Below are positions 3,167 through 49,949 of a DNA stretch of 64,000 bases, one piece after another. Under the pieces are notes generated by a model. The model had not been told where the DNA came from. It worked only from the letters and a program-made list of their open reading frames with translations, and searched no databases. The stretch spans positions 233,165 to 297,164 of IMG/VR virus record IMGVR_UViG_3300048121_001678. One strand, written 5' to 3'. Both the position numbers and the translations under genes were made by a program. Each line of letters begins with the position of its first letter. Position 1 is the first letter of the stretch.

Positions 3167-3280
3167 TATTAACGGAGGGGGAAACCCCTCCTTTTTTTTT
3201 TATTGTTTTTTTAATAGATGGGCCGAGTTAACCTACTAAGGTACTATTAAAAATTTTAAATTCCTAATAAAATTTTACTT

Positions 3281-4045
3281 TTATAACCCCTTATCTCTTT
3301 TAATGTCATCATCGGTTGGTTCGGTTAATGAGTTACCCAAATCCTGAAATCTAGACTGACCTGTATAATCAATTTTAGTTGCAATTGCAGAAATATTAGA
3401 AATAAACATCTCTCTTATATCTGAACGGGGGTGAGAGGAAATTACTGATGATAAAAATTCATCACTAACAATTACATTCTTTTTAAGTTTTGGTAAGTGC
3501 TGTTCAACTAATTTTTCAATACCGGCTCTTTTAATAATGTAAGTATGTGTGTTATAAAATGCAGATGGTCTAATAAAGTGTTTCTTACCAATCCTTTTAC
3601 TATCAATTAGTTTTTTAAAAATTCTGTGTAATGAATTGTGTGACATTAAGCAAAGGTCCCATTCGTAGTCATCCATTTCGTCGAATATTGACCAATCTAT
3701 TGGTATACGAGGGATAAAATCATCTTCTAAAATCATAATAGTATTGTAACCATTCTTATGAGCGTCCTCCCAACACCGAGTATGTGAAATCATTCCACCC
3801 GCTTCACCATATGTTGTCGGTCTATTCCAAAAATCATACTTAATTTTACTCTCAGGTAGTTCCCATCCTTTATACAGGGTATATTCATCACCTTCCTCTT
3901 TAATTAACCTTTTTCCCACATAACCCTCAAACACTTCAACATCACAACCAAATGGTAATGGTAACATCTCAGCTCTCTGAAGTAACTCCTCAATATATTC
4001 TTTTCTGTGGTCAATAGAAATAATGTAGACTTTATCGATATACAT
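3281..4045 (-). CDS. Glycosyltransferase family 25
   Basis: VYIISI..RK, GEAGGMISH..CW, ILEDD motifs. Confidence 0.85.
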   Translation of the reverse strand: MYIDKVYIISIDHRKEYIEELLQRAEMLPLPFGCDVEVFEGYVGKRLIKEEGDEYTLYKGWELPESKIKYDFWNRPTTYGEAGGMISHTRCWEDAHKNGYNTIMILEDDFIPRIPIDWSIFDEMDDYEWDLCLMSHNSLHRIFKKLIDSKRIGKKHFIRPSAFYNTHTYIIKRAGIEKLVEQHLPKLKKNVIVSDEFLSSVISSHPRSDIREMFISNISAIATKIDYTGQSRFQDLGNSLTEPTDDDIKRDKGL

Positions 4046-4133
4046 AAATTACTTTTTTAATTAAAAATAGTATTTGTTATAAAATAATAAACCCACCTAA
4101 GAGGTGGGTTCACTATGTGTCGTATTTAGTGTC

Positions 4134-5015
4134 TTATAAGGACATTAACATGTCCAATAACTCTTGTTGTGGGAACATATCCACTTTATCTTTACGGGTG
4201 TTTGTGTGTGTCCACAAACCTTTAACCTTACCGTAGTATGCGTCCTCATTCCATTCGAATGCATCTGCACCTTTATCTTTAATCAATGATGGTAATCCTG
4301 CTCTAATATCAATACCGTCTCTATCACCAATCCATAATATCCACTTTCTTAACGCTTCAATTTGTTCGTCAGAATAACGATGCCACGTTTTGTGACCTCT
4401 AAATTCTTTATCAAGTGTAACTATTTGTGACTCAGCAACAGATGTTCCAGCATATGTTTTACCATTCTTAATCCATCCAAAGTTACAAACCTCAATGGCA
4501 ACTGAGTTAACGTGCATCTTTTGTGAACCATTTTTACCTAAGTGCCAACCGTAATTACCTTCAGGGAAAGCTTGTACCATTACACCGTCATATGTGTCAT
4601 CATTACCCTTTACTGATTGACCACCCAGTACAAATTCCGTGGCAACTGCACCTCTACTGTCTCTACCCCACGAATCAATACATTTATAAGGATTATTCCA
4701 ACCTGCAGTGTGGTGTAAAAATAACCATTCAGGTTTAATTGGACCTTCTTTATATTCACCCTTAGGTAAAAAATGTTGGTTTATCATCAAACCATTATCA
4801 GTGGTATAAGACTGTTCAGAATTATCTGTAGTTGCTAGACCCATTGCGTCCCAAGTTTTTGGACCTACTATCCCGTCAGAAACCAAACCATTATCCATTT
4901 GCCATTTTTTAACAGTTAACTCTGTACCTTTACCAAAAATACCATCGGTAGTTATATTGAAGAATTCTTGTAGAGTTTTCACTTCTTTACCTCTTGAACC
5001 TATTTTTAAAATCAT
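4134..5015 (-). CDS. Endolysin: peptidoglycan-binding domain plus N-acetylmuramoyl-L-alanine amidase (Amidase_2)
   Basis: LKIGSRG.EVKTLQ..DGIFG.GT..DGIVGPKTW; LHHTAG, WH.G, H(T)N..K.D zinc ligands. Confidence 0.88.
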   Translation of the reverse strand: MILKIGSRGKEVKTLQEFFNITTDGIFGKGTELTVKKWQMDNGLVSDGIVGPKTWDAMGLATTDNSEQSYTTDNGLMINQHFLPKGEYKEGPIKPEWLFLHHTAGWNNPYKCIDSWGRDSRGAVATEFVLGGQSVKGNDDTYDGVMVQAFPEGNYGWHLGKNGSQKMHVNSVAIEVCNFGWIKNGKTYAGTSVAESQIVTLDKEFRGHKTWHRYSDEQIEALRKWILWIGDRDGIDIRAGLPSLIKDKGADAFEWNEDAYYGKVKGLWTHTNTRKDKVDMFPQQELLDMLMSL

Positions 5016-5107
5016 ATTATATTATTTAAAAGTTTATTTACCATAAATATATCTTTGATTATGAAATTTATTATCTTTACCGTTATATGGTTATCAAATT
5101 AAATTAA

Positions 5108-5599
5108 ATGAATGTAGTATTAGTCCTAAACTCAGACTTTACACCACACAACGTAACAACATTACGAAGAGGTTTTGTATTAGTGGAAAAAGGTAAAGCT
5201 GAGATATTGAAAAAAGGTGATGATATAATAACAACATCAGGTAACTTTGTTAGACCCTTAGTTATTCGATTAGTTAATTATGTTAGATATCGAGCAAGGA
5301 ACTTAGGTGTGAACCGTAAACGACTATTTAAAAGAGATAGATACCAATGTGGTTATTGTGGTTCTAAAAATAATTTAACAATCGACCATATAATTCCTAA
5401 ATCCAGAGGGGGGTTAAATACTTGGGATAATTTGGTGACATCATGTTTTAGATGTAATAGTATTAAGGATAATAAAACACCTTCAGAAGCGGGAATGAGA
5501 TTAAGGATTAAACCTTATACACCCACATTATTCTCACGTGTTATCGACGATACTGTTGAGTCAATATGGGAATCATTTAAAAAAGAAGTGTTTAAATAA
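5108..5599 (+). CDS. HNH endonuclease (McrA-like)
   Basis: RDRYQCGYCG..LTIDHIIPKSRGG..WDNLVTSC..CN. Confidence 0.9.
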   Translation: MNVVLVLNSDFTPHNVTTLRRGFVLVEKGKAEILKKGDDIITTSGNFVRPLVIRLVNYVRYRARNLGVNRKRLFKRDRYQCGYCGSKNNLTIDHIIPKSRGGLNTWDNLVTSCFRCNSIKDNKTPSEAGMRLRIKPYTPTLFSRVIDDTVESIWESFKKEVFK

Positions 5600-8864: not shown

Positions 8865-10106
8865 TTATAAGTTTGCTAGTTCACTATCCATATTACTTAA
8901 TACTTTATTAATATATTCAACTTTTTCTTCGTCCGTGGTTTCAATCACCTTTCCAATCGAAATTTGTACACTTTCCTTAATTTCTGTTGATTCATTAACC
9001 ATTTGAGATAATAAATCTTTTTGAAACTTTTCTTTTTCTTTTTCAGATAGTTTAACGTATTCTTCAGGTAACTCAACTCTTCTGTAATCCAATCCTTTAA
9101 TTTCGACACCTAAAATTTTACCAATTTGCATAAAAGTGAGGAGTCCACCTCCTAACGCAGCTACTCTCCAAGTTGCTCTCCATGGGAGTAGACCAACTTT
9201 AGTAAAATATAATAACGCACCTATTAATTTCTTACCCGTATATTTTGACAAAGATTTTGAAATTAAACTACTTAGTTTCGAATATGCTTGGACATTTTTA
9301 CCTATCCAATCAGCATTCTTTTCAAGTTCCATACTAAGCTTTCTTTCCATTGGTGATAAATCTAAACCCTTTGATACTTTATTTAAAAAGGTTTTAAGTG
9401 CACCAGATGTGAACTTTTTTACAAAAGGAATTTTATTCAATAACATACCACCAGGTATAACTGCAAACGCAGCACCAATACCTGCCGATTCATAATCCTT
9501 CTCTTTAACATATAATGCGATATCCGCAGCTTCTAAAACACCGGCAATAGCAAGACCACCGATTCCACCTGTTGCCACAGTAACGATAAGTGCACCTATA
9601 GGTAATACCCAATGCCAAAAATCTTCAGGTAATGGAGGTGATGTTTGACGCTCTTCCCAATCTTCTAAATCTGATTTATAAACCTTCATTAATAGACCCT
9701 TACCTTTAATACCTTTACAAGATGTCCTATATTGGGAACAACTACATATTTTATTATCCTTACAAAGTCTTTTTAATCGTGGAGATGTGTACGTTACAAA
9801 GTAATCTAATTTATTCATCATCACCTTCTTGTCATATGATGACATATTTGATGAGTATACAATGTCTTGGTGAGATGGAGGACTAGGTTTATTTTTACCT
9901 GTGTAGTTTAACATTAATCCAGGTGGTATTGACTTTCCATCAGGCATCAAACCTAAATACTGAGGGTCAACTCTAGTGTTATCTGACTGCATAGTCCTAT
10001 CAGGAATATTAAACTGCTGTTCCTGAATATTCTCATTAAGGGTTTTAGACGAATCGTAATTCATCTTTAATAATATATCTTTTAATATTTGTTCATTATC
10101 TACCAT
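8865..10106 (-). CDS. Putative internal virion or membrane-inserting protein
   Basis: Leader ending TLNEN; Gly/Ala-rich hydrophobic hairpin WVLPIGALIVTVATGGIGGLAIAG. Confidence 0.7.
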   Translation of the reverse strand: MVDNEQILKDILLKMNYDSSKTLNENIQEQQFNIPDRTMQSDNTRVDPQYLGLMPDGKSIPPGLMLNYTGKNKPSPPSHQDIVYSSNMSSYDKKVMMNKLDYFVTYTSPRLKRLCKDNKICSCSQYRTSCKGIKGKGLLMKVYKSDLEDWEERQTSPPLPEDFWHWVLPIGALIVTVATGGIGGLAIAGVLEAADIALYVKEKDYESAGIGAAFAVIPGGMLLNKIPFVKKFTSGALKTFLNKVSKGLDLSPMERKLSMELEKNADWIGKNVQAYSKLSSLISKSLSKYTGKKLIGALLYFTKVGLLPWRATWRVAALGGGLLTFMQIGKILGVEIKGLDYRRVELPEEYVKLSEKEKEKFQKDLLSQMVNESTEIKESVQISIGKVIETTDEEKVEYINKVLSNMDSELANL

Positions 10107-14122: not shown

Positions 14123-14164
14123 AACATAACCGTTATATTTGTTTAACATTAAAAAATAAAATAT

Positions 14165-23066: not shown

Positions 23067-24923
23067 ATGAATATATTAGGTATACATACGGGACATGATG
23101 CATCACTGTCATTAATAATTGACAATAAATTAGTCGCGGCAGTTTCGATGGAAAGGTTTTCAAGGGTGAAAAAAGATTGGATTATTGATAGAGAAAATTT
23201 CGATAGATTTTTAAGGTCTTGCAATGTAACACTTGACGACATTGATTATGTATCTATGGGATATTGGAATAATGATAATATGGATTTCTGTAAATTATAC
23301 TCACCAAAAGATGAAAAATACCCGTTATCAACATATAATCGAGTGCACATGGAAATTCCATTGATTAATAATATTAAGTCGTACTTTCAGGATAAACCAT
23401 GGATAGATGAAATAGAATTTCACGAAGGTAAAGGTTATACTCTACCACGAATGATTGACCGTATAAGACCACCTTTTTCTTCAAGTGACATATCACACTC
23501 AAATGCGTTTAAGATAAACTTCGTAATTGATGGATACGATAGAATCATTCCAGGGTATTTTGTTGACCATCATATTTCACACGCATCTTCATCATATTTC
23601 ACATCACCTTTTAACAAATCATCTATATTCACTGTTGACGCATCCATGCATGAACCATCATCGTGTAGTGGGTATTTTTGGGCACATGAAAATACACTTA
23701 ACATATTGAGAGGTGCTGGTTATACCTATGGTAATTTCTATGATGTGGCTACAGAGTATTGTGGTGTTGGACCAGGGACAACTAAAGCCGGTACGTTAAT
23801 GGGATTATCATCATTTGGTAATATTAGTAAAAAGGCTCAAGATAATTGGGAATGGTGGACAAGACCTTTTGACCAACGGTCAGGTACTGAAGATTCACAC
23901 TATAATGATTGGTTATTCTTACAGATTTCAGGTAAATACCCTTATGTATCATCAATTAGACCTGAAATTGAAAATAAAGAACCAGGTTACGAACATTATA
24001 ATAGAGAGTATCAAATGGTTTACACTAAAAAAGACGTTGACACTCAAGAAGTAATGGACATTGCAGCCGATATTCAGTTTATTGCTGAAAAGTCATTAGT
24101 TAAATATGTTGAAGACCTTTATAACGAGACCCATACTATATGTGACGATAATTTATGTATTGCAGGTGGTACTTTTTTAAACTGCAATGCTAACTACAAA
24201 ATCGCCACTGAAACTTCTTTTAAAAATATACATATATTTCCAGCGTGTGGTGATGATGGAATAAGTGTTGGGTCATCTCTTTATGTTTTACATGAAATAT
24301 TAAATATTGAACGTACTACTTACACTAACAGTGAAATTTCTTATTTAGGGTTTCAATACATGTATCAACCAAAAAGTAAATTTGAGTCAATAGATTACAA
24401 TGTTAATACCGTAGCAAAAAGTATTAGTGAAGGTAAAATCATATGTTGGTATCAAGGAAGGAGTGAATTTGGTCCAAGAGCGTTAGGTAATAGGTCATTT
24501 ATTTCAGACCCAAGAAAGAAAGAAATGAAAGACCAATTAAATAGTCGAGTTAAATTTAGAGAATGGTTTAGACCATTTGCACCCGTAGTTTTAAATGAAC
24601 ATAAAGAAGAGTGGTTTAATATGGATTTTGAATCTCCGTTTATGTTATATACTGTACCTTGTAAGAGACCACAGGACATACCTTCGGCAGTACATATAGA
24701 TAACACATCAAGGGTACAAACACTAAAAAAAGACGATAATGAAGAGTTCCACGAACTAATCGAAGAATTTTACAAAATAACTGGAGTACCAATAGTAATG
24801 AACACATCATTAAACGTTAAAGGACAACCAATTGTTGAGACACCTGAAGAAGCGATGGAGTTATTTGAACAATCAAATGTCGATATTCTTGTGATTAATG
24901 ATAAGATGTACTTTAAAAACTAA
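23067..24923 (+). CDS. Carbamoyltransferase (NodU/CmcH family)
   Basis: GHDASL, HHISHA, GTLMGLSSFG, GG.FLNC, DDGISVG, GRSEFGPRALGNRS, REWFRPFAP, NTSLN. Confidence 0.93.
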   Translation: MNILGIHTGHDASLSLIIDNKLVAAVSMERFSRVKKDWIIDRENFDRFLRSCNVTLDDIDYVSMGYWNNDNMDFCKLYSPKDEKYPLSTYNRVHMEIPLINNIKSYFQDKPWIDEIEFHEGKGYTLPRMIDRIRPPFSSSDISHSNAFKINFVIDGYDRIIPGYFVDHHISHASSSYFTSPFNKSSIFTVDASMHEPSSCSGYFWAHENTLNILRGAGYTYGNFYDVATEYCGVGPGTTKAGTLMGLSSFGNISKKAQDNWEWWTRPFDQRSGTEDSHYNDWLFLQISGKYPYVSSIRPEIENKEPGYEHYNREYQMVYTKKDVDTQEVMDIAADIQFIAEKSLVKYVEDLYNETHTICDDNLCIAGGTFLNCNANYKIATETSFKNIHIFPACGDDGISVGSSLYVLHEILNIERTTYTNSEISYLGFQYMYQPKSKFESIDYNVNTVAKSISEGKIICWYQGRSEFGPRALGNRSFISDPRKKEMKDQLNSRVKFREWFRPFAPVVLNEHKEEWFNMDFESPFMLYTVPCKRPQDIPSAVHIDNTSRVQTLKKDDNEEFHELIEEFYKITGVPIVMNTSLNVKGQPIVETPEEAMELFEQSNVDILVINDKMYFKN

Positions 24924-25114: not shown

Positions 25115-25690
25115 ATGAAATTATTTAGTTACAATAAAAATTCTTTAGAATATAATAAAGTGAGAGTACTACCATATATGTTACTTTTTATTATTTTAAT
25201 ATTACTAAGCTATATGTATGGTTTTTTAGAGGGTAGAGAAGATAAAATTATAAAACTCACACCTCAAGAAAAAGAATTAATCTTAATTAATGTACAAGAC
25301 ACATCATTAACATTTAGTGAGGAAAAACTAATTTCACTAATGAATGAATTAAATATTAAGTTTCCTCATATAGTGTTAGCTCAGGCGAAAGTCGAGAGTG
25401 GTAATTATACTTCTAAAATTTTTAGAGAAAACCATAACCTATTTGGCATGAAGGAGGCTCGTGTAAGAATTCACACAGCACAGGGAACACAATTTAACCA
25501 TGCCTATTATAATACATGGAGGGAATCTGTGTATGATTACGCATTCTATCAATGTAGATACCTGTCTAATATTAACACTGAAGACGAATATCTAAGTTAT
25601 TTAGGTCAATCATACGCAGAGGCAACTAATTATGTGTCTATATTGAAAACAATGATAAAGAGAGAAAAACTAAGAGAAAAGTTTAACTAA
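25115..25690 (+). CDS. Glucosaminidase/muramidase (FlgJ-like GH73) with N-terminal TM anchor
   Basis: LAQAKVESG..NHNLFGMK; YA.A..Y. Confidence 0.8.
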   Translation: MKLFSYNKNSLEYNKVRVLPYMLLFIILILLSYMYGFLEGREDKIIKLTPQEKELILINVQDTSLTFSEEKLISLMNELNIKFPHIVLAQAKVESGNYTSKIFRENHNLFGMKEARVRIHTAQGTQFNHAYYNTWRESVYDYAFYQCRYLSNINTEDEYLSYLGQSYAEATNYVSILKTMIKREKLREKFN

Positions 25691-27357
25691 TGGTAATAAT
25701 AGGTTTATCGCATGGTCATGATGCAGGTGCAACACTTTTTAAAGATGGTGAAATTATAGTATCAATATCAGATGAGAGGTTGACTAGAACAAAAAAAAAT
25801 TACGGATTTTTTAGTAATGTGATTGCAACTAAATCAATTGATTATTGTTTGGAGTACTCTAATTTGTCCATTGATGATGTGGATTATATTTTTTTTAACA
25901 CCACAAACCCAAAACCCGATGTGTTATATTGTTTAAAATATTATTATAATATTGATAGTAATAAAATAATATATGTGACACATCATTTATCACACGCAGC
26001 ATCATCTGTTTTCACTTCAGAATTTGAAGATGTTGTTATAGTGGTTTCTGATGCATTAGGTGAGGACCCCATTTATGGGGACTATGGTTGGAGGTCATTT
26101 GAAGAAAAGGGTTTTAATTTAGTTGAACACGAAGATATAGAAAGTAGTTTCGGTGAGGGGTGGTCTATATACCATTATAAAAATGGTGAGTTTTTTAATT
26201 TAGAAAAAAAATGGGTAGATAGTAATGGTCAGTTTAAACAACTAAAAGATTGTTCGATAGGTTACCTATATGAATGTGGGACAGAACAATTAGTTGGTGG
26301 TATAACTATTGGTAGTGCTGGTAAATTAATGGGATTAGCATCATTCGCGGATAAAGATTGGGTTTCAAAACAAGAAAGAAATCACAAAATTATTTATGAT
26401 AATTTATCTATCAAAGGTGAATTATTTTATCCTGAAATTAATCATAATAGTCCATTTCAAATAAAGTCAAACGTTGCGGGGTTATACCAAAGAGAACAGG
26501 AGGAATGTTCTCATTTTTTAGTTGAGAAATCTAAAAAATTAAGTAATAGTAATAATATTACAGTTGCAGGTGGTTCATTTTTAAATTGTACAACAAACAG
26601 TAATATTGTGAAATCCAACTTATTTGAATCTCACCATTTTTTCGCATCGTCTGACGACTCAGGAATATCTTTAGGGTGTGCTTTATACGGGGCATATACT
26701 ATGAGTAGTGTTAATCGTAAAAAATTCTTTAGTCCTTATTTAGGTAGAGAATATAGTAGAGAAGAAATTTTAAATGAATTAGAAAAACACAATTATTTAA
26801 ATTACAATGAAATAACCGATTTTACACAATTAACAGATATAGTCACTAACCAAATAATAGATAATAAAATTATTGGTTGGTTCCAAGGTAGAAGTGAAAT
26901 AGGTCCAAGAGCGTTAGGTAATAGAAGTATATTGGCAAACGCATCGACTCCATGGATTTCTGACTATATTAATGGCGAGATTAAAAAAAGAGAATGGTAC
27001 AGACCATTTGCACCTTCAGTATTATATGAGTATCAGTCTGAAATATTTGATTTGGATTATTTTTCACCTTATATGTTACTAACCGCTGAAGTAAATACCG
27101 AATGGAGAAACAAAATACCATCAGTAACACATATAGATAATACCTCAAGATACCAATCAGTAACTAAAGATACTAACGAAAGGTTTTATGATTTGATAAG
27201 TGAGTTTAATAATAAGACAGGTATACCTCTACTCTTAAATACTAGTTTTAACGGACCAACAGAACCAATAGTTGAGTCACCAAAAGACGCTATAAATACA
27301 TTCTTAGAGGTGGGTTTAGATATTTTAGTAATTAATGATTTTGTAATTACAAGATAA
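25690..27357 (+). CDS. Second carbamoyltransferase (NodU/CmcH family)
   Basis: GHDAGA, HHLSHA, GKLMGLASF, GRSEIGPRALGNRS, REWYRPFAP, NTSFN. Confidence 0.93.
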   Translation: MVIIGLSHGHDAGATLFKDGEIIVSISDERLTRTKKNYGFFSNVIATKSIDYCLEYSNLSIDDVDYIFFNTTNPKPDVLYCLKYYYNIDSNKIIYVTHHLSHAASSVFTSEFEDVVIVVSDALGEDPIYGDYGWRSFEEKGFNLVEHEDIESSFGEGWSIYHYKNGEFFNLEKKWVDSNGQFKQLKDCSIGYLYECGTEQLVGGITIGSAGKLMGLASFADKDWVSKQERNHKIIYDNLSIKGELFYPEINHNSPFQIKSNVAGLYQREQEECSHFLVEKSKKLSNSNNITVAGGSFLNCTTNSNIVKSNLFESHHFFASSDDSGISLGCALYGAYTMSSVNRKKFFSPYLGREYSREEILNELEKHNYLNYNEITDFTQLTDIVTNQIIDNKIIGWFQGRSEIGPRALGNRSILANASTPWISDYINGEIKKREWYRPFAPSVLYEYQSEIFDLDYFSPYMLLTAEVNTEWRNKIPSVTHIDNTSRYQSVTKDTNERFYDLISEFNNKTGIPLLLNTSFNGPTEPIVESPKDAINTFLEVGLDILVINDFVITR

Positions 27358-34611: not shown

Positions 34612-34685
34612 GCACCCATAGCTCAGCTGGATAGAGCATCTGCCTTCTAAGCAGACGGTCTCAGGTTCGAATCCTGATGGGTGTA
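34612..34685 (+). tRNA. trnR: tRNA-Arg(UCU)
   Basis: GCACCCA/TGGGTGT acceptor; TCTGC-CTTCTAA-GCAGA; no encoded CCA. Confidence 0.93.
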
Positions 34686-34720
34686 CTGGTGAACACAACT
34701 TAGTTGTAAGTAACCTAAAC

Positions 34721-34794
34721 GGACTTTTAGCTCAGTTGGTTAGAGCACCTGACTCATAATCAGTAGGTCGATGGTTCGAGCCCATCAAGGTCCA
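34721..34794 (+). tRNA. tRNA with CAU anticodon (Ile2-like or elongator Met)
   Basis: GGACTTT/AAGGTCC acceptor; loop CTCATAA. Confidence 0.88.
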
Positions 34795-34964
34795 CGTTGT
34801 TGTATTAAATAAAAATAACCAATATCTTTATATTACAGAAAATGTAATGTATATTTGTACTACGAGAGAGAGACAGTAAAGCTGATTAAATTGAGATTAT
34901 GGTAAAGGTTAACCACTCATTCACGCAGTAACCTTGAAAGACCCGAAAACCTCTCTCTTTTAAA

Positions 34965-35037
34965 GCCTTAATAGCTCAGTTGGTAGAGCAGCACATTTGT
35001 AATGTGCGGGTCGGCGGTTCGAGTCCGTCTTGAGGCT
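34965..35037 (+). tRNA. trnT: tRNA-Thr(UGU)
   Basis: GCCTTAA/TTGAGGC; GCACA-TTTGTAA-TGTGC. Confidence 0.92.
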
Positions 35038-35114
35038 CATTAACTGAAACATACCGTTCCTTAAATACGGGTAACGGAAGACCAGGTAGAGAACATTAAG
35101 TAATCTACCAAATA

Positions 35115-35199
35115 GGAAGATTGACAGAGTGGTCGATTGTACTGGTCTTGAAAACCAGCGTACCGAAAGGTACCGTAGGTTCGAATCCTACATCTTCCG
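35115..35199 (+). tRNA. trnS: tRNA-Ser(UGA)
   Basis: GGAAGAT/ATCTTCC; CTGGT-CTTGAAA-ACCAG; long variable arm. Confidence 0.93.
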
Positions 35200-35205
35200 C
35201 AACAA

Positions 35206-35288
35206 TGGGGAGTTGAGCAATTGGTTGGCTCGACAGACTGTAAATCTGTTCCTTTTTAGGCTTGGGGGTTCGAGTCCCTCCTCCCCAA
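35206..35288 (+). tRNA. trnY: tRNA-Tyr(GUA)
   Basis: TGGGGAG/CTCCCCA; ACAGA-CTGTAAA-TCTGT; long variable arm. Confidence 0.9.
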
Positions 35289-35290
35289 CG

Positions 35291-36285: not shown

Positions 36286-36319
36286 TTTCGTATATTTGTA
36301 TTGTTAAACAGATAAAGAT

Positions 36320-42430: not shown

Positions 42431-42562
42431 TTAAAATGTTATTTTAATTGAAATCTAATATAAAATATAAATAAGTAAAAAAGATTGTGTAATATAATTA
42501 AACCAATCATTGTTTATTATGTAGAAATACCATATATTTGTATCAAACAGAAATAAAAAAAT

Positions 42563-43222: not shown

Positions 43223-43245
43223 TATGTAGAATATACATATTACCT

Positions 43246-43278
43246 AAAAACCCCCATCTATTAAGGTGGGGGTTTTTA
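43246..43278. terminator. Bidirectional terminator between clpP and the rhodopsin operon
   Basis: aaaaaccccc-atctattaaggt-gggggttttt; same family as hairpins near 4089, 53038, 53516 and 55569. Confidence 0.75.
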
Positions 43279-43302: not shown

Positions 43303-43941
43303 CTATTTTTTATCTCCACTTGTTGCATGTTTAACACCCATTATTGTACCAATAATACTAAAGGAGTTTGTTAATAAAATACCAAAAAGGTTTGACCATG
43401 TTGATTCAATAATTTTAGAATCATGACCCTTTAATAATACAAAGACATACAAAGCAGTTGTTATAACACCAACACCCATTATTACCCAAAGGGCCACCTT
43501 AACTATATTACTCATTAATTCGGTTTGTGTTTTCTTTTGAAGTAGCGAAAGGTCGGTTTCAGCAAGTTCCTTAGCTTGTTCCGCTTTATATCTTAACCTA
43601 TCCGCTTCTTCCCTAGACTTCTCAGATTCTTCTTTAGACTTAGTAGCTATTTCTGCAGAATCAATAGCTTCTTTTAGTGCTGTTTCTAATTGTTTGTTAA
43701 CTCTAATATTTTCTTTTGCTGCTGATTCTAAGTCTTTATTTTGAGACTGAACCTGTTTGGTAACCTGTAAACGTTTCTTTCTTGCAGTAACATCTCTGTC
43801 CTTACATGTTTTTAGATAGTCTACTAATTCTTTATCATCCTTTTCTGCTTTTAGAACTTTTAATATATTTCCTTCCAAATATATTTTCTTCTCCTTAGCT
43901 AAGGTCAACAATACTTTTTTTACTTCAGGAGTTATTATCAT
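43303..43941 (-). CDS. Coiled-coil protein with two C-terminal TM helices
   Basis: K/E-rich heptads then VALWVIMGVGVITTALYVFVLL and LFGILLTNSFSIIGTIMGV; ATGA overlap with the rhodopsin stop. Confidence 0.75.
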   Translation of the reverse strand: MIITPEVKKVLLTLAKEKKIYLEGNILKVLKAEKDDKELVDYLKTCKDRDVTARKKRLQVTKQVQSQNKDLESAAKENIRVNKQLETALKEAIDSAEIATKSKEESEKSREEADRLRYKAEQAKELAETDLSLLQKKTQTELMSNIVKVALWVIMGVGVITTALYVFVLLKGHDSKIIESTWSNLFGILLTNSFSIIGTIMGVKHATSGDKK

Positions 43942-44519
43942 TTTTCATATTTTGTGTGTATGTAAATAGCCACACCTAATTTTGCAGTTAAATCAACTAA
44001 AGAATACAATATAATTGTCATTAATGAATCAGTTGTAAAATATACTATAGGGTAAAACATCCATAAAGTTAATACTCCAATGAAAAAATTTAATTGTTTT
44101 TTCTTTATTCCATTTGATAAACTCACGAAAGTATAGATTGAAAACATGGTTCCTATGAAACCACCCAAGACTTTGGGTATAATAGATGCTTCACCTAAGA
44201 ATCCAAACAACAACATACCCAACATACAGAGTATTGAAGATAATAAGGTTCCAATTTTTTTGTGTTTTACTTTTAAGAAAGTATACATTTGATATATTAG
44301 AATAGGTACGGTAAATGTCCAGTCTAAGTATCTCCATGTTCTTAAATTCGTAGTATCATCAATACCAAATAAATGTGACATTAACATATATGATACACCA
44401 GCAATCAATAATATTATTGATGACAATTTTGACTGTAGTGAATTTAATGAGTTGTACCCAAAATAAAGTCCTCCACCTAAAAATAATAAGGACGTAGTGA
44501 ATAAAATATCGCTAATCAT
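43938..44519 (-). CDS. Compact type-1 microbial rhodopsin (DTQ motif)
   Basis: 7 hydrophobic helices; helix C RYLDWTFTVP, helix D MLLFGFLGE, helix F W.FYP, helix G DLTAK with Lys180. Confidence 0.9.
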   Translation of the reverse strand: MISDILFTTSLLFLGGGLYFGYNSLNSLQSKLSSIILLIAGVSYMLMSHLFGIDDTTNLRTWRYLDWTFTVPILIYQMYTFLKVKHKKIGTLLSSILCMLGMLLFGFLGEASIIPKVLGGFIGTMFSIYTFVSLSNGIKKKQLNFFIGVLTLWMFYPIVYFTTDSLMTIILYSLVDLTAKLGVAIYIHTKYEK

Positions 44520-45021
44520 TTTTGTACTGTTTTAATTTATCGTTTAGTTTAATATTTTCCATTCTAAGGTTAAAGTTAACCTCCATCTGTTCCTTTATTT
44601 TTTCTTCCAAATCTTCTCTATACATTTTGGATACATCATCCTTTATTTTTTCTTGTTTTTTAGATTTGATTTTTTGGTTGATTCTCCTGATATTACTTAA
44701 CGCACTAATTGAGATGACTACCCAACCCCAATTCATGTGACTCCATGTATATGGGTCGTATTCATAGAAGTGTAGACCAATAAACAAAATGGACATAATA
44801 CCATATAGGTACGCAAATAATTTTCTCCTTTCTAATTTACTATATACCACTGAGTAAAGTGTACCAAAACCAATTAACGAGCTCAGAATACCAATATACC
44901 AAAGGTGATAATTTTCCATCATCAACACAGCAGGGGCAAAGATGAACCAAATTAAACCTTGAATAATTTCAGTAGGTTCAGAATCGTGGTAGGTTAAGAT
45001 ATGTCCTAGTTTTTTTATCAT
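44512..45021 (-). CDS. 4-TM membrane protein with C-terminal coiled coil
   Basis: Hydrophobic residues ~20-110, then K/E/Q-rich helix; overlaps both neighbours. Confidence 0.75.
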   Translation of the reverse strand: MIKKLGHILTYHDSEPTEIIQGLIWFIFAPAVLMMENYHLWYIGILSSLIGFGTLYSVVYSKLERRKLFAYLYGIMSILFIGLHFYEYDPYTWSHMNWGWVVISISALSNIRRINQKIKSKKQEKIKDDVSKMYREDLEEKIKEQMEVNFNLRMENIKLNDKLKQYKND

Positions 45022-45455
45022 TTGTACACTTTAAATGGGTTTGTTTTATTTTTATACCCTTCATAGTCTTCCCTAAAATCCTCTAAACGTGGTTCAATGT
45101 CGTCTGATTTTATAATCCAAAATTGAGCACCAGCATTTTTTGCCTTCTCTATTTCTTGATTATCATCAGATGATGATATGATTCCTATCACACATCCATT
45201 TCCGTATTCATGATTTATTTTATGGACCATCTCAATTCCATTGAATGAAGAACCTATGATATTCAAATCAACAAACACACATTCAGGACGTTCATGGTTC
45301 ACGTCATCTGGAAACCATTCTTTGAACTTTTTATCTGCTTCATCTGAAGAGTTTAACGCCTCTAACGAAAGAGTAATATCTAAGATACTACACGCATCTT
45401 CGAAGACCAAGTGGAAAAGGTCTTCATCATCAATTAACATTATTGAATTAATCAT
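45018..45455 (-). CDS. Single-domain response regulator (receiver)
   Basis: IMLIDD (D9/D10), VFVDLN (D63), ISSS, IIK. Confidence 0.9.
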   Translation of the reverse strand: MINSIMLIDDEDLFHLVFEDACSILDITLSLEALNSSDEADKKFKEWFPDDVNHERPECVFVDLNIIGSSFNGIEMVHKINHEYGNGCVIGIISSSDDNQEIEKAKNAGAQFWIIKSDDIEPRLEDFREDYEGYKNKTNPFKVYK

Positions 45456-45462
45456 TTCTATA

Positions 45463-46713
45463 TTATTTAATTTTAATCTTTATTTTAGTTCCGTAATTTA
45501 ATTTTTCGGAGGTAATAGAAAAGTCGTGCTCTTGTAGGATTGCAATACATATATTCAGACCTAACCCACTACCACTTTCCTTTTGGTCTTTTTTTCTCGT
45601 ATAAGGTTTAGACAGTTCTATAAACTCTCTTTGACTCATACCTCGTCCATTATCTTGTATAATTAAAGTTTCTTCGTCTTCCATATAAATCATTACCGAC
45701 TTTGTAGGACTATCATTATATTTCAAACCGTTACGAATTAAATTATCTATTGCTGTACAAAATAATGGTTCATTCACATCAATCTCAGGTAAATCATCAA
45801 TCACCACCTGTTTCACATAAGAAGTTGAGGATAGATAGTCTCTCAAAATTTCTTTGAGGTTGGATTTTGTTTTTTCTAACTGAACTTCTTGCTTTACTAA
45901 GTTTGTGAACTCTTTCACACCGGAATACACTTTCTGAGTATGTTTCAAACCTTCTTCCAACATCTTAAGTGGAGAATCTATTTTTAATTCTTTAATTTGT
46001 TCATCAGAAATTCTTCTTTTCAAAGACCTTAATCCTCTTGGCATATAAGTATTAATACCTGAATGCATATCGTGTCTAAGGATTTTAGCTGCATGTTCTA
46101 AATAAGAGTTTTTTTGGTTCAACACCACTTCGGCATCATGTTGTGAAGTAATATCCGTTGCTATTTTTAATATGGTAGTATACTCACCATCCTCATTTTT
46201 AATAGGTGTATAATTACCAAATAACCATTTTTTGGAACCGTCTTTTGCAACCCTTTCGAATTCACCATTCACACTCTTACCCTGTCTCAAAGTATTCCAA
46301 AAGTTTAAATACTCCTTACTTTTAGCATATTCAGGTGTGACCATATTACTATGATGTTTGTTAACTATATTTTTTTCAGGACATCCCATAATATCACAGA
46401 AATTGTCATTAGCTGAAATTATATTCCCGTCAATACCCATAATCACCACTAAATTTGATTTACTGATAGCATCTAGTTGTGCATTTACGTTTTCTTCTTT
46501 GAGTCTGATGTTTTTTAAAAGCTCACTAATAACCATAAAGAAGGGTGGCATAAACGCAATTACACAAGCGTATCCAAATTGTGCTAAAAACATACTGTTT
46601 TCACATATACCAAAAACAATACAAGATTGCACAGAGAAAAACGCAAACATAATTATTGCCGCAATTCCCAAAGATATCTTGGACTTAATTGATAATAGTG
46701 AAACCGTATCCAT
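45463..46713 (-). CDS. Membrane-anchored PAS/PAC sensor histidine kinase
   Basis: 2 TM; PAS DG.IISAN.NF..W..L..G...GEF.RVAKDG..W..Y.PI..ATDIT; H-box RHDM; N-box DNLIRNGLKY; G1 DNGRG; G2 GSGLGL. Confidence 0.93.
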   Translation of the reverse strand: MDTVSLLSIKSKISLGIAAIIMFAFFSVQSCIVFGICENSMFLAQFGYACVIAFMPPFFMVISELLKNIRLKEENVNAQLDAISKSNLVVIMGIDGNIISANDNFCDIMGCPEKNIVNKHHSNMVTPEYAKSKEYLNFWNTLRQGKSVNGEFERVAKDGSKKWLFGNYTPIKNEDGEYTTILKIATDITSQHDAEVVLNQKNSYLEHAAKILRHDMHSGINTYMPRGLRSLKRRISDEQIKELKIDSPLKMLEEGLKHTQKVYSGVKEFTNLVKQEVQLEKTKSNLKEILRDYLSSTSYVKQVVIDDLPEIDVNEPLFCTAIDNLIRNGLKYNDSPTKSVMIYMEDEETLIIQDNGRGMSQREFIELSKPYTRKKDQKESGSGLGLNICIAILQEHDFSITSEKLNYGTKIKIKIK

Positions 46714-46716
46714 AAA

Positions 46717-46917
46717 TTATAACTCAGACTTTCTGAATCCACATTTACCGAAAAACCACTTTGAAGGGCAGAAACCTGTCCACACTCCTACGTTTAACAT
46801 GGCGATGACGAAAATTACGACACCCCATGATTCCAATAAAAAACCTGAAAGTAGTACCAACGACATTAGAAGGTATACCATACGTGTGTCTGTGACACTT
46901 TTTAATAAATTTTTCAT
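46717..46917 (-). CDS. YgaP/DUF2892-like 2-TM protein
   Basis: R..YL...TGFCP motif. Confidence 0.7.
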   Translation of the reverse strand: MKNLLKSVTDTRMVYLLMSLVLLSGFLLESWGVVIFVIAMLNVGVWTGFCPSKWFFGKCGFRKSEL

Positions 46918-49893: not shown

Positions 49894-49949
49894 TAAAATT
49901 ATATTTGTTATTATAAATATACGAATATTTATAACTAAACAGTATAGTC

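Follow-up and report, generated by a model that had tools for sequence, protein, structure and literature searches.

Type 1 (microbial) rhodopsins have been characterized in several groups of cellular organisms and in giant viruses of eukaryotes, and a number of these described systems are relevant for the protein analyzed here. Proteorhodopsins, such as green-absorbing proteorhodopsin (GPR, PDB 7b03/2l6x), are proteins of about 250 aa that carry a carboxylate proton donor on helix C (the DTE motif) and a His residue on helix B (His75 in GPR) paired with the acceptor Asp. Proteorhodopsins with Gln in the donor position (DTQ) occur in SAR11 and LD12, and one of these, from deep water, is reported to pump protons outward in E. 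coli (Olson et al. 2018, as cited in bioRxiv 10.1101/2022.08.01.502354). The haloarchaeal sensory rhodopsins SRI and SRII are encoded next to the transducers HtrI and HtrII, and bacterial “Proteo-SRs” are accompanied by Htr-like transducers; replacement of the donor with retention of the acceptor is the pattern of the haloarchaeal sensory rhodopsins (PMC10519204). In green algae, histidine-kinase rhodopsins (HKRs) combine the rhodopsin, the kinase and the receiver in a single polypeptide, whereas giant viruses encode compact rhodopsins of about 210–225 aa (OLPVRII, OLPVR1, ChoanoV1) that are usually discussed as pumps or channels, and for which no kinase linkage is known. Finally, flotillin-associated rhodopsins are reported to keep the Schiff-base Lys but not to bind retinal (Kovalev et al. 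2025, as cited in PMC12379486).

Here we examined a 64,000-nt stretch of DNA (hereinafter, the window) that is 100% identical to part of IMGVR_UViG_3300048121_001678, a 297,164-nt IMG/VR viral contig, and in which an unusually short type 1 rhodopsin with a DTQ motif had been predicted from sequence alone. This observation was borne out. An intact ATG-to-stop ORF of 193 codons is located at positions 43938–44519 on the minus strand, and its product scores 53.2 bits (E = 3.7e-14) against the Pfam family Bac_rhodopsin (PF01036), for which the cutoff is 24.6 bits. A profile of 51 relatives aligned over the full length of the protein with GPR (7b03, E = 1.9e-17), its best sequence match, with helix C (RYLDWTFTVPILIYQ) lying over RYIDWLLTVPLLICE of GPR, so that Q77 takes the place of the donor Glu108, “WMFYPIVY” over “WAIYPVGY”, and “VDLTAK” over the Asp227…Lys231 motif. 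The original prediction equated R63, D66, T70 and Q77 with bacteriorhodopsin R82, D85, T89 and D96, and D176 and K180 with D212 and K216, and noted W153, Y156 and P157 in helix F; all these residue numbers are correct, although the equivalence with bacteriorhodopsin rests on established knowledge of the family. The two proteins share the helix C “RY-DW--TVP”, helix D “G--GE”, helix F “W--YP--Y” and helix G “D---K” patterns, but there is no conserved His in the position of GPR His75, where either Ser43 or Leu46 is aligned depending on the alignment. The short length results from trimmed EF and FG loops and the lack of an N-terminal leader relative to GPR, but is not unique, given that other rhodopsin clusters of 188–200 aa appeared in the same search; two other short rhodopsin clusters (P0075 and P0069) have no kinase neighbor on short contigs.

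Within the alignment of 51 family members, R63, W67, T70, P72, Q77, E110, W153, Y156, P157, Y160, D176 and K180 are invariant, and D66 is present in 50 of the 51 sequences, with Ala in the remaining one (P0007). Thus, the Schiff-base Lys, both counterions and the aromatic residues of the retinal pocket are retained. The position that tunes proteorhodopsins between green and blue, Leu74 in the window protein, is occupied by Leu, as in GPR, in 47 members and by Met in 4, which, based on the known L/Q switch, predicts green absorption. The AlphaFold2 model built on the family alignment consists of seven helices (mean pLDDT 89.5, pTM 0.86), and in a Foldseek search, the best PDB matches (TM 0.80–0.86) were rhodopsins, led by OLPVRII (6sqg, TM 0.86) and followed by PsPR, PsFAR (9r21), GPR and xenorhodopsin. 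A fold search of BFVD matched only the ChoanoV1 rhodopsin, and the nearest neighbors in a protein language model search were giant-virus rhodopsins as well. Pairwise dN/dS among close relatives is 0.05–0.13, as low as for the neighboring kinase, so the gene is real and subject to strong constraint.

The proposal that this protein represents a new clade is supported. A word-indexed search of 5.8 billion proteins yielded 54 clusters of 116–212 aa at 39–97% identity, of which the full-length ones are 187–212 aa, and one outlier. A profile search of 1.84 billion representatives yielded 13 clusters at E ≤ 1e-30, after which the scores for full-length proteins dropped from at least 136 bits inside the family to about 80 bits or less outside it. 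In a maximum-likelihood tree of 66 sequences (LG+C20), the family, with lengths of 187–235 aa, was monophyletic (100/100 support) with a stem of 1.49 substitutions per site, and was sister to the entire sampled bacterial PR/XR clade (99/96). Nesting among ordinary host proteorhodopsins, which had been specified in advance as an outcome that would refute the prediction, was therefore not observed, although in this tree the SAR11 lineage was represented only by SAR11-like “Rickettsiales” MAG rhodopsins (loci L012, L021 and L025). Giant-virus rhodopsins (loci L093 and L094 and their relatives), which also have different third-position motifs, were located on the other side of a 99/92 branch, and a quick 120-taxon tree was in agreement.

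The family was found only in metagenomic and viral contigs. No member was detected in a scan of one genome for each of 185,579 bacterial and archaeal species, where the best hits were PR-like genes at 25–39% identity, in a tblastn search of 50,697 deposited phage genomes (INPHARED), or in PHROGs; NCBIfam and PADLOC gave nothing for the rhodopsin either. Full-text literature searches found no description of a rhodopsin in a bacteriophage. The window itself carries genes typical of a large phage of bacteria, including many HNH endonucleases, endonuclease VII, polynucleotide kinase, a peptidoglycan-binding amidase (endolysin), ClpP, five tRNAs, a tmRNA and sugar-modification genes, and a relative at 82% identity lies on a 303,974-nt contig.

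The original prediction did not mention the genomic context, which turned out to be the more informative feature. The rhodopsin gene belongs to a group of six tightly packed genes on the minus strand, with the five junctions consisting of overlaps of 4, 8 and 4 nt and gaps of 3 and 7 nt. This putative operon starts with a 66-aa small membrane protein with a conserved Cys/Trp motif (SM66; 46717–46917), an optional member of the cassette located 3 nt upstream of the kinase. The 416-aa sensor histidine kinase (HK; 45463–46713) contains two N-terminal TM helices (residues 15–33 and 44–62) joined by a loop of about 10 residues, a cytoplasmic PAS domain, a DHp domain with the invariant H-box YLEHAAKILRHDMHSGINTY, and a HATPase_c domain with complete N, G1 and G2 boxes; no MCP or HAMP domain was found, and visual inspection alone, in relation to LOV-type flavin sensing, showed no NCRFLQ-like motif in the PAS domain. 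The next gene encodes a 145-aa receiver-only response regulator (RR; 45018–45455) with conserved DD (residues 9–10), a conserved “FVD” aspartate (D62 by our count) and a strongly conserved C-terminal tail (IEPRLEDF). It is followed by a 169-aa membrane protein with a C-terminal coiled coil (TM169; 44512–45021), in which two hydrophobic segments scored as TM although we read four in the sequence; this is another optional cassette member, and its stop overlaps the rhodopsin start by 8 nt. Downstream of the rhodopsin, with the start overlapping the rhodopsin stop by 4 nt, is a 212-aa protein (CC212; 43303–43941) that is predicted to consist of a small N-terminal domain and one helix of about 135 residues running into the first of two TM segments, which form a C-terminal hairpin that is the most conserved part of the protein. 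CC212 is phage-specific and always part of the cassette, and a structure search with it found no fold match; for CC212, TM169 and SM66, PHROGs, NCBIfam and PADLOC gave nothing specific. A GC-rich 15-bp hairpin flanked by A and T runs (43245–43278), between the convergent CC212 and ClpP genes, is the probable bidirectional terminator closing the operon.

Wherever enough flanking sequence exists, family rhodopsins at 38–100% identity are adjacent to a kinase of this family, in about 25 loci, not all of which are independent, with four exceptions. This adjacency persists in at least five arrangements, namely, HK-RR-TM169-Rho-CC212 as in the window, HK-RR-Rho-CC212 (loci L008, L215 and L217), Rho-HK-RR-CC212 (L005 and L113), TM169-HK-Rho (L090–L092) and Rho-HK (L107, a contig with 61% GC). 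The kinases contain none (L107, 301 aa, and L215, 300 aa), one (most loci) or two (L113) PAS domains on an invariant chassis that consists of the TM hairpin and the DHp and catalytic domains, and the rhodopsin and kinase trees agree for the subclade of the window. Three of the exceptions (L108, L111 and L112) form one subclade, whereas the fourth, L218, has SM66 and TM169 homologs upstream but no kinase on its 2.3-kb contig. The subclade that lost the kinase neighbor includes the only family members that regained a carboxylate donor, the DTE proteins P0063 and L112. This single evolutionary event is compatible with an association between Gln and kinase coupling but cannot prove it.

A complication for any functional interpretation is that the kinase cassette is far more common than the rhodopsin. 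The kinase comprises more than 120 clusters at 70% identity or above, and IMG/VR holds 580 kinase loci against at least 7 with a family rhodopsin. Of the 80 best kinase loci, 76 lack a rhodopsin, with the gene orders HK-RR-CC212 (31 loci), SM66-HK-RR-TM169-CC212 (21), SM66-HK-RR-CC212 (20), and partial or other rhodopsin-less orders (4); three of these loci were checked in detail. A tblastn search of the INPHARED phages with the kinase produced only a weak PAS-only match. On the kinase tree, rhodopsin-less kinases are interleaved with rhodopsin-linked ones, and rhodopsin has been gained or lost at least four times, although the deep rhodopsin-linked branches were reached through the rhodopsin search, so that, given this ascertainment bias, the association cannot be inferred to be ancestral. 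The kinase therefore works without light input, and the rhodopsin is a facultative add-on to a phage signaling module that must have another input and an output of its own.

Taken together, these observations lend partial support to the original interpretation, according to which this is a new clade that is more likely sensory than pumping and relies on retinal from a host that makes proteorhodopsin. The sensory reading is also the one we favor, with only moderate confidence, but not for the reason originally given, because Gln in the donor position does not decide the matter; the stronger evidence is the conserved, translationally coupled adjacency to a membrane histidine kinase and a response regulator. 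We propose that the protein is a retinal-binding photoreceptor that a large bacteriophage adds as a light-input subunit to its own two-component system. The analyses directly demonstrate the intact rhodopsin fold, motifs and pocket, the strong purifying selection, the packing of the gene with the kinase, the response regulator and two or three small membrane proteins, the persistence of the rhodopsin-kinase adjacency in different gene orders, and the existence of partner kinases without a PAS domain. By contrast, retinal binding, the photocycle, phosphotransfer and the output are all inferred. In this scenario, host-made all-trans retinal would bind K180, light would isomerize the retinal, and D66 would accept the Schiff-base proton; because the donor position is Gln, reprotonation would be slow and a signaling (M-like) state would be long-lived, which is the effect of E108Q in GPR. 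The conformational change would then pass laterally to the TM hairpin of the kinase, as in SRII and HtrII, and alter autophosphorylation on the H-box His and phosphotransfer to the receiver. The strongest single argument for a receptor-transducer pair is that a kinase consisting only of a TM hairpin and a catalytic core has no visible input other than the membrane, where its rhodopsin neighbor resides. However, no physical or co-evolutionary evidence of a rhodopsin-kinase contact was obtained, and the residue differences in the kinase TM helices between rhodopsin-linked and rhodopsin-less loci follow the phylogeny.

Under this interpretation, the locus resembles the haloarchaeal and Proteo-SR systems in that the receptor gene is adjacent to that of a partner with a two-helix membrane hairpin and a cytoplasmic signaling part, the acceptor Asp is kept while the donor carboxylate is lost, and signaling would end in a His-Asp phosphorelay. 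It differs from these systems in that the partner is itself the histidine kinase, without MCP, HAMP, CheA or CheW, that the helix C counterion is Asp rather than the Tyr of Proteo-SRs, that the system is encoded by a phage, and that the cassette also exists without the rhodopsin. The coupling of a rhodopsin with a histidine kinase and a receiver is shared with the HKRs at the level of generic domains, but here, these are three separate genes in a phage operon. A more far-reaching possibility, which we consider tentative, is that this is the first photoreceptor system described in a bacteriophage and a new transducer type for sensory rhodopsins, whereby a virus-specific mini-rhodopsin borrows host retinal and signals through membrane-helix contacts to a phage-encoded kinase, as a plug-in input module that would allow the phage to adjust its infection program, perhaps lysis timing, to light. 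If so, environmental sensing of light through the phage's own kinase would be added to what phages are known to do, and a new mode of receptor-to-kinase coupling to microbial rhodopsin biology; the evidence suggests, but does not prove, that some phages can sense light. At 187–195 aa, this would be one of the smallest natural seven-helix photoreceptors, with a ready-made kinase output that could be of use in optogenetics. Independently of the rhodopsin, the SM66-HK-RR-TM169-CC212 cassette, which occurs in at least 580 IMG/VR contigs, is a large uncharacterized phage signaling module.

The main alternative, which appears unlikely but is not excluded, is that the protein is a light-driven, possibly slow, outward proton pump carried as an auxiliary metabolic gene (AMG) that sustains the proton-motive force of the infected cell in the light, with its position in the kinase operon reflecting co-expression only or with the kinase PAS domain reading the energetic state changed by the pump. 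The retention of D66, T70, R63 and D176, the pumping by a SAR11 DTQ proteorhodopsin, which is a full-length cellular PR variant, the pumps GPR, PsPR and OLPVRII as the nearest structures, and the subclade with DTE and no kinase neighbor all speak for this view, as does the fact that giant-virus rhodopsins are usually discussed as pumps or channels. However, Q77 is invariant in 51 of 51 kinase-linked members although a carboxylate gives faster turnover, the adjacency to the kinase survives several rearrangements, and those partner kinases that lack a PAS domain could not sense the energy state in this manner. The frequent loss of the gene from otherwise identical cassettes fits an optional sensor input as well as it fits an AMG.

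Less likely still is a retinal-free or otherwise non-photochemical seven-helix subunit serving as a membrane scaffold or regulator of the kinase complex, as reported for flotillin-associated rhodopsins. PsFAR is among the top structural matches and no retinal-synthesis gene was found in the window, but the conservation of the classical pocket residues (W67, W153, Y156, P157, Y160, D176 and K180) and of the R63/D66/T70 triad, with the single D66A exception, would be hard to explain without a chromophore, and no flotillin family was found among the cassette or window ORFs. A light-gated channel like the group 1 giant-virus rhodopsins, which would depolarize the host membrane, for example, to trigger holins and lysis, is very unlikely on present evidence, being backed by the resemblance to giant-virus rhodopsins in the language model and fold searches and by a recurrent, but not universal, proximity to lysis genes, whereas in the tree the family is not part of the giant-virus cluster. 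Lysis genes lie within 2 kb downstream of the cassette in 15 of 60 kinase loci, are adjacent to the cassette in L008 and L134, and are directly beside the rhodopsin in L112, which lies directly upstream of an M15 peptidase and a holin, but in the window, the endolysin is 39 kb away. With regard to the output of the system, the candidates are CC212 and, speculatively, the timing of late functions such as lysis.

The absence of blh and crt genes from the window, noted in the original prediction, was confirmed among the 71 window ORFs of at least 100 aa, which leaves roughly 230 kb of the contig outside this count. A tblastn search with two Blh proteins from Flavobacteriales and Bacteroidia MAG loci, in which blh directly follows the proteorhodopsin gene, gave no hit in the window or in the family loci, and a pattern scan of IMG/VR limited to two flavobacterial Blh motifs found none either. 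Dependence on host retinal is thus plausible but unproven. The host is possibly a member of Bacteroidota, but the indications are weak. Only 3 of 52 ORFs are preceded by a Shine-Dalgarno-like motif, and the leaders are 50% A; TAnnTTTG is mildly enriched and is often located 20–45 nt before starts; and in a related contig, a CHU_C-domain protein is encoded beside the cassette.

The SM66-HK-RR-(TM169)-CC212 cassette, which comprises the small membrane protein SM66, the histidine kinase, the response regulator, in some cases the membrane protein TM169, and the coiled-coil protein CC212, and which spans positions 43303-46917 of the minus strand in the window, occurs without any rhodopsin in at least 580 IMG/VR contigs (loci L132-L214 among those we examined). 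No homolog of this cassette was found in 50,697 deposited phage genomes. It appears to be a large, uncharacterised phage two-component module.

In L112, a contig that carries the rhodopsin family's DTE member, the rhodopsin (3275-5204 for the entire arrangement) sits directly upstream of a small TM protein, an M15 peptidase and a holin (Phage_holin_4_1), that is, inside a lysis module, with no kinase nearby. In L111, another kinase-less family locus, the gene located just upstream of the rhodopsin (9374-9985) encodes a 203-aa protein with one N-terminal TM helix and a domain that has no Pfam match. The family member in L107 (7219-8702 for the pair of genes), which lies on a contig with 61% GC whereas the others are 29-37% GC, is followed, with a 4-nt overlap, by a 301-aa kinase that consists only of a TM hairpin, DHp and the catalytic domain. 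One family member, P0007, a 90% identical relative, contains Ala in place of the counterion Asp66, which could be either a natural variant or a sequencing error. Outside this family, a different cluster of short rhodopsins (P0075; 193 aa, DTE) is represented in the contig L129 (1697-4159) near a cryptochrome/photolyase-like gene (DPRP, FAD_binding_7), which is another possible light-related pairing.

With regard to the expression signals, the motif TATATTTG recurs 20-45 nt before the start codons of many ORFs in the window, for example, at 42533-42540 before ClpP, and at 49900-49907, 14134-14141 and 36291-36298, whereas Shine-Dalgarno motifs are almost absent (3 of 52 ORFs). These signals resemble those of Bacteroidota. 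A tmRNA gene at 1299-1688 on the plus strand of the window was called by both ARAGORN and Rfam (82.5 bits, E 1.8e-30), with the tag peptide GETFAKLQAVGLLRTEEVAVA, and its 5' end overlaps the ORF at 142-1335 on the other strand. A cluster of five tRNA genes, namely, Arg-TCT, Met-CAT, Thr-TGT, Ser-TGA and Tyr-GTA, occupies positions 34612-35289 of the plus strand.

Among the ORFs of at least 100 aa in the window, one produced a hit to Pyr_excise, a T4 endonuclease V-like pyrimidine-dimer glycosylase (E 7.8e-6), that is, a UV-damage repair gene in a phage that also carries a light receptor, the latter role being inferred. Two Nol-like carbamoyltransferases are encoded at 23067-24923 and 25690-27357 on the plus strand and, together with a dTDP-4-dehydrorhamnose epimerase, heptose-phosphate enzymes, glycosyltransferase 25 and APS kinase encoded by other ORFs of the window, these look like a phage-borne surface-sugar modification set.
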